Assembly: GCF_052425735.1 (NCBI RefSeq)
Contig: NC_135763.1
Coordinates: forward strand, 29,326,001-29,390,000
DNA length: 64,000 nucleotides
Direction: 5' to 3'
Source: Oculina patagonica
Lineage: Eukaryota
Shown here piece by piece: positions 206 through 61,770 of the stretch. How positions within the stretch are numbered: the first letter of the stretch is position 1; each line of letters begins with the position of its first letter. The notes under the pieces are model-generated. The model saw only the letters and a list, made by a program, of their open reading frames with translations. It was not told where the DNA came from and ran no database searches. A program made the position numbers and the translations under genes.

Positions 206-3200
206 CGAGTCGAATCTGGTATGACTGTGGAAAGGGCACACCGAAAACACAATGAGCGGCTGTTACCACGTACTGTGGTGTCACCAGTGTACTACCACAC
301 TTAAAACTGAATTGTCCAGTGGTCTCATTTTTGATGAGTAGCTCCGCCTGCCAGGGCCACGAGTGTGGAATGGCTGTCTCACCTCCGACGATCCGGGACA
401 TAGGGGGACGTATACCACAAGGCAAGTCGTCAAGATCAGGAGAATCTGTAAAAAAAATTGTAGCGAGTTGCTCTGGAATTAGCGCATAGTAAGGGTTAAG
501 CTCGAGAGTATGTATACTCGAAAAATAAGCATGCTTTTATATGTATTTTGTATTTATAAAACGGATTGCTTTTGGACGTCGCCCTTCTTTTTTTTAAAGA
601 CGTCCTACTTTTTTGGACGTCGCCTACTTTTTCAAAGGACCTTTGTCACGAATTTAAACATATTTTTTAAACAGCTCAAACTTTTTTGTCGCAGGAGACC
701 TAATAATAATGGTCCATTTTAATTAACAATCGCTATATTACAGCACTAAAACTGTTAACAAGCATTTTGGGCTGCGCGGATGACTAAGACAGAAATGGAT
801 TGCAACTTGTAAAATTAAGGCTTAACTTTTCAAGTTGTCTCCATGCCTTCAAAAAATCTTTATAGTGATCTTTATAGTCGAAGTTTGATTTATGCCGGCA
901 AGATAAGTTATATCTTCCTTTAAATGCTCAAAGATTAATGTTTTCCATTGGTTAAGTTGCCTGACACTAATTTCAGGACAGCTTAGACAAAAAAATCTGC
1001 AAAATCCCCGTGACGTAGCTCCTTTACGTTTATCTCATTTTCAGTGAAAATATCATTAACAATGCTCGAAAATGTTCCTTGATTGTGAATATGTGGTCGT
1101 GATTTCTTCAATAAAACCGAAAAAAGGACTGTCACTCCTCCAATTTGAAGTAATAGTTCTCAATAAACGAAAGAAAAAGAATTTAACCCAATACACCGCG
1201 TGACCTAGTCCTTGGGCAAGACACTTTACTTACATAGTGTCTATCTCCACCCAGGTGTATAAATCGGTACCGGCGACATAATGCTAGGGGGGTGGGTACC
1301 CTGCAATGGACTAGCATCCCATTCACGAAGTAAAGGAAAAGTCTGTGTCCGAGCCAAGTAGCCCATACAGCCGGAGCTTATCCCGGTTTCCGTAGCATTA
1401 AGTGACTAGGAGTATTGCTACTCCCCCCTCTATGGGATGCTAGTCCATCGCAGGGTTACCCCCCAGCAGTAAATTCGCTGGTACCCATTTATACACCTGG
1501 GTGGAGAGAGCCACTGTGAGAGTAAAGTGTCTGGCCCAAGAAAACAACGCAGCGCCCAGGCCAGGCCTCGAACCCGGGCCGTTGAACTCGGAGTCGAGCG
1601 TACTCCCCGCCTCCCACTCCCATTCCGGTAGGGAGTAGAGATATTCCTAGCCACTTAATGCTAACGACATCGGGATAAGCTCCGGCAGTATGGGCCATAT
1701 GGCTCGAGGCTTCCCCTTTTTTTAAGCCATTTCAACTACAAAGCATGGTACCTCTTTCTCCTTCCGGGATCTCACACTCTGTGTTCTCTGGATAGTCACA
1801 CATATTTTTCTCTTCGTTAAACATCAGTCCATCTGGGCAAGGCATCTTGTTAGTGTTTCCTCCAGAGCAGGCGATGAATCCAAAACAAGTATGTGGATCT
1901 TTGTAATTTCCATCTTGCTTTCCTTTACAAAATCCTTCATCCAAGCAAGTTCCTACAAACAAAAATTTAGGGATTGTTTAGTAGATTCTAGATAAGTAGA
2001 TGTTACAAACGTTTGCTTGCAGGAGAAAACAGGGGCAAACTAACTAATTATAGCGCAGTCAGAAATAAATGGAGAAATTTTTCCAAATCATAGCTAAATC
2101 ATAAAAAATTTCCAAATCATAGCTAAAACATAGCTAAATAACTTCCAAATCATATATGTAGCTTTGTAGATCTTTCACGACCGAGTTATCAAGTGAGTAC
2201 TGACTTATTTTGTATTTATCATGCAAAACTGCGACTCCTACGCATATGTGCTAATGGAGGCCATAAAATTGTGCATAAAAATCTCCATTTATATCACGTC
2301 TAAATTACTGTTACGTCTGAAATCGAAAATGCAATAAAAATAGCCATCCTTTAGACAGTGAATGTCGCAGCGATCACATCAGGACATCACATATTTAAAA
2401 ATAATACAAAGAAGATAAATAAATAAAAATAAATAATTTACCTTTTATTTAGACAGGATGAGGATAAAAGCTAGAAGCTTGTGGGGCCGTGTATTCCTGA
2501 TCGAATTTGAATTCGGAGGTGTTGGTTTTTTGTGGAGGGAGGAAAGCCGGAGAACCCGGAGAAAAACCCTCGGAGCAAGGACAAGAACCAACAACAAACT
2601 CAACCCACATACATGTATAACACCGAGTCCGGGAATATTGGCACATTGGTGGGAGGCGAGCGCTCTCACCACTGCGCTATCCCTGACCCCCTCATGTGTA
2701 CATGTACTAAGTTTGTATTTTTTGATGAACAAGTTAATTAAGTTTTTAAATAAACTGTCGTGCTGCGTTGGCTAAGGCGGGCAAGTGAAACACTTAGGTA
2801 ATTATTAACTGGAAGCCGATCAGGGTAAATAACATGCCGTAGCGACTTTTGAACACTTAACTTTTTTAGTGTAAGCCCTTCGTCAAAGCACATTGTTATT
2901 GATCCACTCAGTGCTCCGACAAAGGGCCAACGCCACAAGGCGAAACGTCAGCTTTACAAAATTTGCTACAGGGCGTTATTTACCTCAATCATCTTCCAGT
3001 TGATACTCAACTGCATTTGTTTGACAAATGTTTTTTTTTTTTTCAAGTTTATTTTGTATCAGATAGAGCTACGTACCGAGCTGTACATGGAATGCAGTTC
3101 AAAATAGGACCAAGTATGTACGTAGAACCCGGGGGGGGGGGGGTTCTTTTTTTTTTTGGGGGGGGGGCCCGGGGGGGGTTTGGATATAAAAAAGGGGTGA

Positions 3201-4418
3201 TATTTTATATGGGAAGGGAAATTTTTTTTAAATTTTTTAAAAAGGGGGGGGCCCCCCCAAAAAAAAAAAACCCCCCCCCCCCCCCCCACGTAGAAAAGCA
3301 GATTTACGCTGCTTTGATTAACACAATCCCTTTTGTTTCTTGGTTAAACGGTTCATTATTACAATCACTATTGTTGTTACTGGGGTTGTCAGTGAGGGTG
3401 TAGCTGTTTGTTTGCTTATTTGTTTTTGTTATACCGAGCAGAAGCAGAAGCAACAACGTTTACATGATGGACTACGAAGTAAGGTAATAAAATTATGGAT
3501 CGATAAATGTCTGCTTAATGTATTACACAGAACGAAATTACTTCTAGTTTCGATTTTATCTCATTTTGTTCTGTCTTAAAAAGTTCTGATTTTGTTATAA
3601 ATGCATTTGCAGCACTAATAAAAATAGAAATTTTCTCATCGGAAACAAGATGACGCGTTGGAAGTCAAGGTGTCATCTCAGTTCCGTTTGCTTTTGAGGT
3701 GCAATTGTAGGATTTCAGCAGGAATATTCTTTTAGCGAAGTACTTGAAATGGGGCAAGGTGTAATAAATTATGATAATTACTATATCATACGGGTCGGCT
3801 GAAAGAAAAAAAAAAGGGTTCAAACAGTTCTTCAGTAGGTCGTGTTTCAAACAAAATTTAACGTTGAAATGATAAACTGAGCAAAAGTTGTGTTTTTATC
3901 ACTTGTTTTGAACTGCTCTTTTTGCGTCGGGAGAAAAAGAGAAAACTCTGCTTTTTTATAGCGTATCTTTTCTAGCCTTCAAGTTTGTTTTTTATCAGCG
4001 TCGAATATGCGCGACTGTTTGTTGTATTTTTATCCGCCATTCTTCTTAAATTGTACCCTTTTGATGATGCACGGTATTAACTTTTTCCTATATATTTTTT
4101 TTTTGGAAGAGCCGACAGTTCCTTTTAATTGAAATACGATTTGAGCAATCTCAAAGTAGATTATCTCATTGTTTTGCTAGAAAATAATCAAAATAATCCG
4201 CGTTCATGTCTGCTACAGTTAATTCGATCATCAGTAAATTAACTTTATCCTTGTAAAGCTAGGGCTCTTAAGCTACGAAGATATAGAGAAACAAAAACAC
4301 GCCCGATCAGGTGAACAAGCCATAAATTCAGAGTAGGAGAGCAATGCGACTTACCTTCAAAGTGGTTAAAAGAGATCAAAGCAGCACAAATCAGTTGAAA
4401 AACTGTTGACGGAGTCAT
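206..4418 (-). CDS. Secreted chitin-binding type-2 (peritrophin-A/CBM14) domain + S1A serine protease; 3' part runs off the window start
   Basis: Exons (minus): 4418-4355 ([22 protein letters not shown], signal-peptide-like, donor GTAAGT); 1952-1752 ([59 protein letters not shown], ChtBD2 cysteine pattern); 445-206 ([18 protein letters not shown]|[15 protein letters not shown]...TAAHC, activation site and His57 motif). All introns are GT-AG, phase 1 and frame-consistent. Confidence 0.88.
1210..1715. mobile_element. Nested tRNA-derived SINEs: minus-strand copy (about 1325-1617) inserted in a plus-strand copy of the same family
   Basis: 1333-1600 is near-identical to the full SINE at 44941-45235. 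The flanks 1210-1324 and 1618-1715 are the reverse-orientation version of the same body. TCCCATTC is duplicated at 1317-1324 and 1618-1625 (TSD). Confidence 0.8.
2450..2692 (-). mobile_element. tRNA-derived SINE, second family
   Basis: Minus strand begins GGGGTCAGGGATAGCGCAGTGGTGAGAGCGCTCGCCTCCCACCAATG (A-box-like head), followed by the GTTTTTCTCCGGGTTCTCCGGCTTTCCTCCC central domain typical of metazoan SINE superfamilies. Confidence 0.7.
2795..3012. repeat. Head-to-head inverted pair of a degenerate hammerhead-motif repeat (Penelope-derived type)
   Basis: Plus copy GCTCCGACAAAGGGCCAACGCC...CGAAACGTCAGC...GCTAC...GTTATTTACC...CTTCCAGTT (2913-3012) is mirrored by a minus copy at 2795-2890. The catalytic cores are mutated (CCGACAA and TTGACGA instead of CTGANGA). 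Confidence 0.5.
3128..3287. mobile_element. MITE with poly-G/poly-C termini and 8-bp TSD (interior looks homopolymer-corrupted)
   Basis: ACGTAGAA occurs directly at 3120-3127 and 3288-3295, and the G-run and C-run ends are inverted. Confidence 0.65.
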
Positions 4419-60809: not shown

Positions 60810-61770
60810 TTAGCAAAGCTTGCATGTTTTCTTGCAGTTTGCTCGTACCCAAGAATGGTAGCTGCAGTAGCGAGTCCAGTATCTACAATGCGAGTGGTTG
60901 TCTACACAACCTGGTAAAAATCAATGTAAAAAATAAATACAAACAATATAATATATTAAATGTCGCATATGATACAAAAGCATAACGTATGTCATTTTCA
61001 AGCTACCTGTGGAGAACGTAAGATCGTTTATTTTCTTACAGCGAACGTTGCCGTTGTCACAAAGACCAAAAGAAAGAAATGTCGCCCGAAAAGTCGCAGC
61101 GAATTGTCGAAGTGAGCGAAATATCGCAGCGAAATATTTGATAGCATAAGCTAGCATATAGCCAAATAAAGGAAAGAGATGCTTGATTTTGTAATGTTTC
61201 GATTGACAACCATGTAATGTATTTATTTATTTTTTCTTTATTTTTTCTTAATTTTTTATTTTTTGCAATCCGATATTTGGGACAGTTAACTTCGTACGAA
61301 AAGCAAATATCGTTGAGTTATAAGTGGCAGTTCATGTTACAACAATACTTAACTATTAACACACTGCTAAAGAGCTGAAATAAGCGACAAATACCAGGGA
61401 CCAGAATAATTGCCTGGGGGCAAAATAAGACCCGCCGTGACTTCAGGTATCTTACGGTTAACTATTGCTTCATGCTAAATCTTCGGATACAATTACAGTC
61501 AAAATACTCAGCGGGTGCCGCTTAGAATTGCAGAATAGATTTGATTAACAGCAAACGGATTGCATTATTCGTTTCAAACATTCAAATTTAATTTAAATAT
61601 TGTAGATCATCCAACCGTGAGCACGTGAACACGTGAACATGCCAAAAATTAACCAATTCAAAGCGGCACACGCTGAGTATTTTGACTGTAAATGCCTTCA
61701 CTTTGACGTTTTAAATTGGAAAGAAATCGCTTTTACTCACTTGCACCGCCGCCTCCGCCACTGCTACCTC
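60810..61770 (-). CDS. 3' end of a gene ending in a Gly/Ser linker + ShKT domain (probably a serine protease-ShKT; 5' exons lie beyond the window)
   Basis: Micro-exon 61770-61741 (GGSSGGGGGA, AG/GTGAGT, phase 1) and exon 60910-60810 (S-CVDNHSHCRYWTRYCSYHSWVRANCKKTCKLC*). Probable UTR exons 60668-60636 and 60477 to about 60400 with AATAAA. Protease identity is inferred from the paralog at 57336-57936. Confidence 0.85.
61496..61688. mobile_element. Tc1/mariner-type MITE
   Basis: TA-CAGTCAAAATACTCAGCG ... CGCTGAGTATTTTGACTG-TA. Confidence 0.85.

Follow-up and report, generated by a model that had tools for sequence, protein, structure and literature searches.

In Nematostella vectensis, trypsin-ShK proteins are abundant, each ShK domain is held in one exon, and the clade, which has expanded in anthozoans, shows tandem duplication (Babonis et al. 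2019, PMC6767649). The ShK domains of sister trypsins are rarely monophyletic in that species, from which exon shuffling was concluded, with ShK domains easily gained and lost (PMC6767649). Here, we analyzed a window of 64,000 nt from the 529-Mb genome of Oculina patagonica (assembly GCF_052425735.1, contig NC_135763.1, C6:29326001-29390000), centering on a gene at position 54075 that encodes two ShKT domains (d1 and d2) and no protease, hereafter the free 2xShKT gene. This gene shares coding and non-coding DNA with PE, a protease-ShKT fusion gene located to the right of the window, and lacks the segment that holds the protease exons of PE. The Oculina family resembles the Nematostella one in joining an S1A protease to one or more C-terminal, single-exon ShK domains. 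The Nematostella work read gain and loss from annotated-protein trees; in Oculina, by contrast, the DNA itself shows the breakpoints of one event, and the product of that event is a stand-alone, spliced and expressed peptide gene that appears to keep a protease promoter and signal exon.

Snake-venom disintegrins derive from metalloproteinase (SVMP) genes through loss of the protease domain. Work on SVMP gene structure (PMC4963849) and on the evolution of three-finger toxins (3FTx) by domain loss (PMC10421932) give the context for such events. As in the snake system, the Oculina locus would have yielded a gene for a small, disulfide-rich secreted peptide from a larger enzyme gene minus its catalytic part; the phylum, the enzyme class and the peptide fold are different, and "toxin-like" is, in Oculina, a prediction from sequence. 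The relevant framework for gene architecture is the class 1-1 module shuffling described by Patthy for extracellular proteases, in which modules bounded by phase-1 introns are added or removed in frame (PMC8001218), together with the tendency of signal exons to end in phase 1 (PMC1626468). The Oculina genes differ from it in two ways: PE and the three protease-only genes of the window (PA, PB and PC) have phase-1 introns even within the protease domain, and the event proposed here is a deletion of several exons, not the insertion of a single module. A literature search found no description of a protease-tail deletion route to ShK peptides.

The free 2xShKT gene is collinear with PE except for the protease exons

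Alignment by blastn divided the homology between the free 2xShKT gene and PE into four consecutive blocks (Table 1), which together cover promoter, introns, exons and 3' untranslated region (3'UTR) at 72-93% DNA identity, with E-values down to 1e-157. Identity reaches 82-93% over the promoter and signal exon. Within this series, the free gene is without a 2141-nt segment of PE (PE 73639-75779), which begins 29 nt before the end of intron 1, takes in protease exons 2-4 and the linker, and stops about 390 nt into the intron that follows. Since both breakpoints fall in phase-1 introns, splicing of the signal exon to d1 keeps the reading frame. The coding sequences tell the same relationship: the best genome match of d1 is the PE d1 at C6:29401916 (68% amino acid identity), the best matches of d2 are the PE d2 at C6:29402394 (70%) and the window segment 50517-50627 (73%), all 12 of the 12 cysteines are kept between the free gene and PE, and the ratio of nonsynonymous to synonymous substitution rates (dN/dS) is 0.63-0.73. 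The sequence-only reading of the window had proposed that a protease-ShKT fusion gave rise locally to free ShKT peptides. That proposal gains support from the collinear DNA and its 2.1-kb gap; its choice of parent does not stand, as the parent is of the PE type and not the gene ending at 60910, and the direction of the change we infer.

The window segment that matches d2 belongs to a second 2xShKT copy at 47.9-52.0 kb, which was missing from the features listed in that reading. Its signal exon has lost the ATG and is 11 nt shorter, its d1 contains an in-frame stop and a gap, and the first cysteine of its d2 has been replaced; this copy is dead. One blastn high-scoring segment pair aligns it with the free gene straight across the gap junction, and the gap is therefore older than the duplication that separated the free and dead copies. 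The 5' module made up of promoter and signal exon occurs only three times in the 529 Mb, in the free gene, PE and the dead copy, and the 3'UTR exon at 55951 is the best-conserved block among these three (84-86%).

The signal and protease frame of PE is open, with the catalytic His, Asp and Ser present and three phase-1 GT..AG introns. Exon 2 is PD-like (80-83%; PD is the protease gene whose ShKT tail lies at 60910) and exon 4 is nearer to the C12/PA/PC type, so that some recombination in the history of PE is possible. In RNA-type runs of the same study, 0.27-0.42 of the sampled words from the PE tail were found, near the exon share of PE, and PE is probably transcribed. PE and PD are described here as protease-ShKT fusion genes on predicted models drawn from splice-site phase and exon order. 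Upstream of PE, several tandem partial copies of the PE/free promoter upstream sequence, homologous to window 53600-53829, occupy ext 69000-72640.

Table 1. Coordinates of the features at and around the locus. Positions are those of the window unless stated otherwise; ext denotes window-equivalent coordinates in the right flank (64001-77500).
Feature	Position	Strand	Details
Free gene TATA box and exon 1	54008-54129	+	TATA 54008, start ~54044, signal peptide encoded by 54075-54129, ending at a phase-1 donor
Free gene exon 2, ShKT d1	54675-54767	+	93 nt, 1-1, acidic, Cys spacing 6-6-8-3-2, Pfam ShK 33.8 bits
Free gene exon 3, GGGS linker + ShKT d2 + TAG	55092-55207	+	basic, 6-6-9-3-2, Pfam ShK 26.8 bits
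Free gene exon 4, 3'UTR exon	55951-56040 (3' end approximate)	+	AATAAA at 56016, good acceptor before
Gap junction	54538-54546	+	inside intron 1; left homology ends 54537 (= PE 73638), right starts 54547 (= PE 75780)
Collinear block 1	53682-54537 = PE 72722-73638		upstream, TATA, 5'UTR, signal exon, most of intron 1; blastn
Collinear block 2	54547-55023 = PE 75780-76266		end of pre-d1 intron, d1 exon, next intron; blastn
Collinear block 3	55030-55515 = PE 76332-76853		d2 exon + flank; blastn
Collinear block 4	55878-56054 = PE 77062-77236		3'UTR exon; blastn
PE	C6:29399128-29403230	+	signal-protease-ShKT-ShKT; outside window, 19 kb downstream of free gene
PE exons (ext)	signal 73128-73182; protease 73668-73865, 74206-74418, from 75014; d1 75916-76008; d2 76409-76504	+	Gly-rich linker between protease and d1
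Dead 2xShKT copy	47881-51988	+	TATA 48813; signal remnant 48875; d1 remnant 49398-49469; d2 50517-50627; 3'UTR exon 51872
Second d1+d2 locus	1167-3534 (protease) and 7375-7894 (ShKT pair) of stretch C6:29486000-29494100
PD terminal ShKT exon	60810-60910	-	6-6-9-3-2; TAA 60812-60810; GT donor 6 nt past stop; Pfam ShK 38.4 bits
PD linker exon	61741-61770	-	30-nt Gly/Ser, phase 1-1
PD probable 3'UTR exon	60400-60477	-	acceptor + AATAAA; homologous block in 57936 stub; predicted from sequence
PD 5' exons (ext, outside window)	signal 68200; exon 2 67939-67700; exon 3 67053-66823; exon 4a 66466-66302; exon 4b 65442-65287	-
57936 stub	57123-58033	-	collapsed PD copy: promoter, signal exon 57936-57882, intron 1, 123 nt of exon 2 (57632-57510)
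PA	10005-14050	+	exons 10005-10059, 10651-10872, 11639-11851, 12321-12647 or -12653; mini-exon from 13951
PB	24663-34720	+	internal duplicate without signal exon (exon 2' 29142, exon 4' to ~31266); mini-exon 34621
PC	42007-46170	+	same four-exon structure; mini-exon 46071
CBM14+protease gene	206-1952	-	CBM14 exon 1952-1752 (201 nt, 1-1), first protease exon 445-206 (240 nt, 1-1)

The free gene is transcribed and spliced, and encodes a predicted secreted peptide with two ShK motifs

Transcription of the free gene was examined with polyA raw reads of two runs and contigs of a third run, all carrying the same species label. RNA covers the exons only and crosses the splice joints 54129>54675 and 54767>55092, both GT..AG, while the reads begin about 30 nt past the TATA box, at ~54044, and carry a GGGG template-switch tail. 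Moreover, six polyA reads from each of the two raw runs (6+6) continue past 55207/8 into the exon at 55951. Both coding joints of the gene and its start near 54044 are thereby confirmed, and the splice donor noticed just after the stop codon proved to be real and used. Exact and near-exact pattern searches of the window and genome with the run-on sequence of these reads gave no match; a fuzzy search located it at 55951 with several differences, which are probably allelic. A 3'UTR intron starting 0-15 nt past the stop is common to the free gene, PE and PD (55208-55950 and 60803-60478 on the minus strand for the two located in the window).

The predicted mature peptide has about 70 residues, with an acidic d1, a GGGS linker, a basic d2 and 12 cysteines. 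The Pfam ShK cut-off (PF01549, 20.9 bits) was exceeded by d1, d2 and the 60910 exon (Table 1), and also by d2 of the dead copy (28.5 bits). The first three fit the six-cysteine ShK pattern ending in CxxxCxxC, and the dead-copy d2 fits it without Cys1. The free peptide shares this pattern with ShK and the type 1 sea-anemone potassium-channel toxins, and differs from them in its two tandem domains and its shorter loops (31-32 residues); a search of PDB sequences with d2 returned no significant match, including to the solved ShK toxins. We infer that the peptide would act extracellularly as a binding or blocking module, and it is probably secreted by the same gland-type cells as the proteases. 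Within window positions 53900-55600, a related organism has DNA contigs that match the d1-intron-d2 region at 90-95%. The contig of that organism over the signal exon shows PE-type bases.

The ShKT domains of the free gene group with protease tails

A whole-genome scan, in which the 60910 exon was recovered, gave 452 ShKT candidates, and many proteases with ShKT tails are scattered across C1, C4, C5, C6, C10 and C12. Short-type ShKT exons follow a protease exon 4 on the same strand at seven places on C6 (29418k, 29442k, 29454k, 29468k, 29479k, 29489k and 29506k), at three on C12 (9968k, 9991k and 10019k), at one on C10, and at others on C1, C4, C5 and C2. A second pair of d1-like and d2-like domains was found at C6:29486-29494k, 3.9 kb past a PD-type protease that has an in-frame stop in exon 4b.

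We then built a tree of ShKT domains from 59 rows (30 protease-tail-type and 29 classical) and 36 columns. The free d1 groups with the PE d1 and the first domain at 29493k (support 99/92); the free d2 groups with the dead-copy d2 (98/98) and then with the PE d2 (98/82); and the d1 and d2 clades are sisters (96/80). A grouping of the ShKT domains at 54075 with unlinked ShKT genes would have spoken against the proposed origin; instead, they sit among the 30 protease-tail types, apart from the 29 classical ones (96/90).

PD and its collapsed copy

The sequence-only reading had expected a protease upstream of the linker exon at 61770, and a complete one is present there, just outside the window. 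It had also paired the PD terminal ShKT with d2, on a common 6-6-9-3-2 cysteine spacing and the motif RYCS.H..V...CKKTC.LC*. The match itself holds, and its specificity to the pair does not: the spacing and a near-consensus version of the motif recur in about 20 protease-tail ShKT exons on C2, C4, C5, C6 and C12, so that the motif is a family consensus, and the best genome matches of the 60910 exon lie on C4, C5 and C12.

The gene at 57936 had been taken for a collapsed protease sharing the 3' end of the PD tail, and the alignments agree. Positions 57510-58033 correspond at 80% identity to the 5' part of PD, from the promoter through the signal exon and intron 1 to the middle of exon 2, and positions 57123-57513 to the 3' flank of the PD ShKT exon (60263-60639) at 75%, joined directly to the exon 2 fragment. 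The 57936 gene is PD minus everything from mid-exon 2 to beyond the stop, a deletion stub. Only positions 1-34 of the Pfam Trypsin profile are matched, and TAAHC, DIAL and GDSGGP are absent; because all the catalytic residues are gone, the stub is most likely a pseudogene.

Protease-only genes and the surrounding cluster

PA encodes a predicted 280-residue chymotrypsin-like protease in four exons separated by three phase-1 GT..AG introns, and PB and PC show the same junctions. PB contains a 3.8-kb internal duplicate that repeats these junctions and lacks a signal exon (24819-28560 versus 28636-32380, 99-100% identity); it may represent one gene with two proteases in frame, a duplication of very recent date or an artefact of assembly. 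PA, PB and PC all keep phase-1 donors at, and 6 nt past, the exon-4 junction of the family, and about 1.1-3.3 kb downstream they share a conserved acceptor and, behind it, a mini-exon with three codons and a stop, then AATAAA. They would probably be genes of five exons in which exon 4 is spliced directly to the old 3' exon, and the read-through C-termini predicted for them are probably wrong. The mini-exon is weakly similar to the 3'UTR exon of PE and the free gene; across gene types, homology between 3'UTR or terminal exons reached shuffle p values of 0.002-0.01 for three of nine pairs and was not significant for the others, which is suggestive only. In an exon-4 tree, PA, PB and PC fall in a 98/98 clade with the ShKT-fused PD, PE and two C12 genes (C12a and C12b), with the ShKT-fused C10 gene as sister. 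As this nests them among ShKT-fused genes, ShKT loss is the more parsimonious history, and the tree together with the conserved terminal mini-exon suggests that the protease-only genes probably lost their ShKT exon. A permissive tblastn search downstream of these genes found no relic ShKT exons.

The window takes up the left part of a gene cluster that spans at least 250 kb and encodes secreted chymotrypsin-like (S1A) proteases. Its GC content is 33-41% and it contains no runs of N. Membership in S1A is indicated by Pfam Trypsin (PF00089) on exons 2 and 4 and by TAAHC, DIAL and GDSGGP (His57, Asp102 and Ser195) in PA, PE, PC and PD; in the PE translation, residue 189, counted back from Ser195, is apparently Gly. 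The nearest solved structures for protease exon 4 are chymotrypsin C and chymotrypsinogen (1pyt_D and 4h4f_A, E 5e-23). The catalytic triad is common to chymotrypsin C and the coral paralogues, which differ from it by their ShKT tails. The usual build of the family starts with a 55-nt signal exon and a protease in three or four exons. A Gly/Ser linker then leads to one or two ShKT domains, each in a single exon, and the stop is followed by an intron and an exon of the 3'UTR. At the left edge, the CBM14+protease gene continues beyond the window, with its exon 4 at C6:29324459-29324797, and its CBM14 exon matches PF01607 over the full profile (positions 1-53 of 53, 55.4 bits). The CBM_14, Trypsin and ShK domains of the window exceeded the curated Pfam cut-offs, and together with exon mapping they bear out the gene contents first listed for the locus (CBM14 plus protease, proteases, a double ShKT, a linker with a ShKT tail and a collapsed protease). 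At the right edge, positions 63664-64000 hold a repeat about 335 nt long that is interspersed on many chromosomes. Of its 1480 candidate copies, 40 were scored, at 95-98% identity, and it looks like a young, abundant repeat family.

Signal exons and intron phase

Five signal exons of exactly 55 nt had been counted in the window, and all five (10005, 24663, 42007 and 54075 on the plus strand and 57936 on the minus strand) do run from ATG to a G|GT donor over that length. PA, PB and PC are paralogues at 64-82% identity, the 57936 exon is 96% identical to that of PD, and the 54075 exon is 93% identical to that of PE; the five are three paralogue classes of one protease family and not as independent coincidences. 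The claim that all coding introns are phase 1 was likewise upheld: every coding intron that could be placed within the window is GT..AG and phase 1, namely those of PA (three), PB and its 3.8-kb duplicate, PC, the CBM14 and protease exons, the PD linker and ShKT exon, and the 54075 gene (two). The d1 exon (93 nt), linker exon (30 nt) and CBM14 exon (201 nt) are class 1-1 modules with lengths divisible by three, and terminal ShKT exons start in phase 1 and end at the stop codon. The sole exception encountered lies outside the window, where a phase-0 intron precedes GDSGGP in PD-type genes. This split of protease exon 4 (ext 65179-66470) is absent from PA, PB, PC, PE and the C12 genes, and is a useful marker separating two protease subfamilies. 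Phase 1 at the borders of signal peptides and modules is a known bias (PMC1626468, PMC8001218), and the only unexpected cases are the two introns inside the protease domain. Given that the 55-nt exons are paralogous, the phase bias known and the ShKT motif family-wide, the strong signal at this locus is the non-coding collinearity with PE and not these exon and motif features.

Discussion

The explanation that we consider likely as a whole is that the free 2xShKT gene is a duplicate of a PE-like gene without its protease exons, that is, a passage from fusion protein to free peptide. A two-ShKT protease gene like PE would have been duplicated, and a single deletion of about 2.1 kb, starting in one phase-1 intron and finishing in another, would have taken out protease exons 2-4 and the linker, after which the signal exon would have been spliced in frame onto d1. 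Promoter, TATA box, 5'UTR, signal peptide, both ShKT exons and the 3'UTR exon would have been retained, so that a former protease promoter would now drive the gene, whose secreted product of about 70 residues would carry two ShK knots. The deletion-bearing gene would later have been duplicated, with one copy decaying at 47.9-52.0 kb. A second, non-productive internal deletion in the same cluster left the 57936 stub of PD, and in some proteases of the cluster exon 4 would be spliced directly to a terminal mini-exon, the ShKT exon probably having been lost.

Once the homology is granted, the direction from fusion to free peptide has a good probability in its own right; it is favoured by tree and parsimony, and is not proven. 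The same collinearity would also fit the reverse course, in which an older free gene became PE by insertion of the protease exons 2-4 and linker of a paralogue into intron 1. Babonis et al. (2019) argue for a repeated origin of trypsin-ShK associations in Nematostella (PMC6767649), and the PD-like exon 2 of PE next to an exon 4 nearer C12/PA/PC could hint at a mosaic origin. Such an insertion, however, would have had to bring three exons and a linker into a single intron with order and phase correct, and one deletion is simpler. The signal exon of the free gene has the 55-nt, phase-1 form of the protease family; a d1+d2 tail is also found on a second protease subtype, the PD type; in the tree, the free d1 and d2 fall within the protease-tail ShKTs; and the fusion build is widespread, whereas the free copies are local and the 5' module is restricted to the trio. 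We thus regard the reverse course as unlikely.

A derivation of the free d2 from the single terminal ShKT exon at 60910 would account for their common spacing and C-terminal motif. It is disfavoured by a genome search in which that exon is 50-55% identical and ranks about 15th for d2 (50%, versus 70% for the PE d2 and 73% for the 48k copy) and 4th for d1; its own best matches lie elsewhere, and DNA homology between the flanks and introns of the 54075 and 60910 loci is absent. As flank and intron homology goes to PE, the pairing of d2 with 60910 is rejected, and we hold this origin to be very improbable. The plainest alternative would be an ordinary tandem family in which the 2xShKT gene stands beside proteases by chance, as might be imagined with so many ShKT candidates in the genome and with phase-1 signal exons being common (PMC1626468); it is refuted by the extent and E-values of the non-coding homology to PE, and we give it practically no credence.

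Several observations nonetheless weigh against an origin of the free gene by deletion from a PE-like fusion. The approximately unbiased (AU) test, on 36 columns, did not reject an exclusive pairing of d2 with the 60910 ShKT (p 0.197). Comparison of the introns with those of the C12, C10, PD, PA, PB and PC genes gave low-complexity matches only, and hence no homology that would polarise the event. The DNA contigs of the related organism have a hole at 54185-54583, which spans the deletion junction. In the assembled PE, the Gly-rich linker and its phase-1 donor (ext 75340-75400) are out of frame with the end of the protease; an in-frame phase-1 GT lies slightly beyond this donor, and the offset may come from a recent break, from use of another donor or from misassembly of a GC-rich repeat. 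Finally, the Lys-Tyr pair that ShK toxin has between Cys3 and Cys4 is absent from the free peptide, whose loops there read SHSEIQAQ (d1) and SWHPIVKKQ (d2), a further difference from the toxins.

The locus fits the exon-shuffling picture drawn in Nematostella and adds to it a resolved event yielding a stand-alone, expressed peptide gene. The origin of small cysteine-rich peptides in cnidarians is mostly inferred from protein trees; here, the event itself can be seen, with a parent-type gene, an exact gap, a kept promoter and signal exon, and both an expressed and a decayed daughter, all inside 30 kb. That anthozoan stand-alone ShK peptides arise repeatedly from the C-terminal tails of gland-cell proteases by intron-to-intron deletion is a tentative extension, which we consider possible and do not yet favour. 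If this extension is true, such peptides would first be expressed from a protease promoter, in gland cells of a digestive or secretory kind, with recruitment to venom or signalling coming only later, and this locus would be the first case with parent gene, breakpoints, live daughter and dead daughter side by side. Domain loss in a phase-1 gene offers a concrete, testable route, and it predicts co-expression of the free gene with the proteases in gland cells and not in stinging cells. Furthermore, the tethered and free ShKT domains form a natural pair for asking what the ShKT tail does on the protease.

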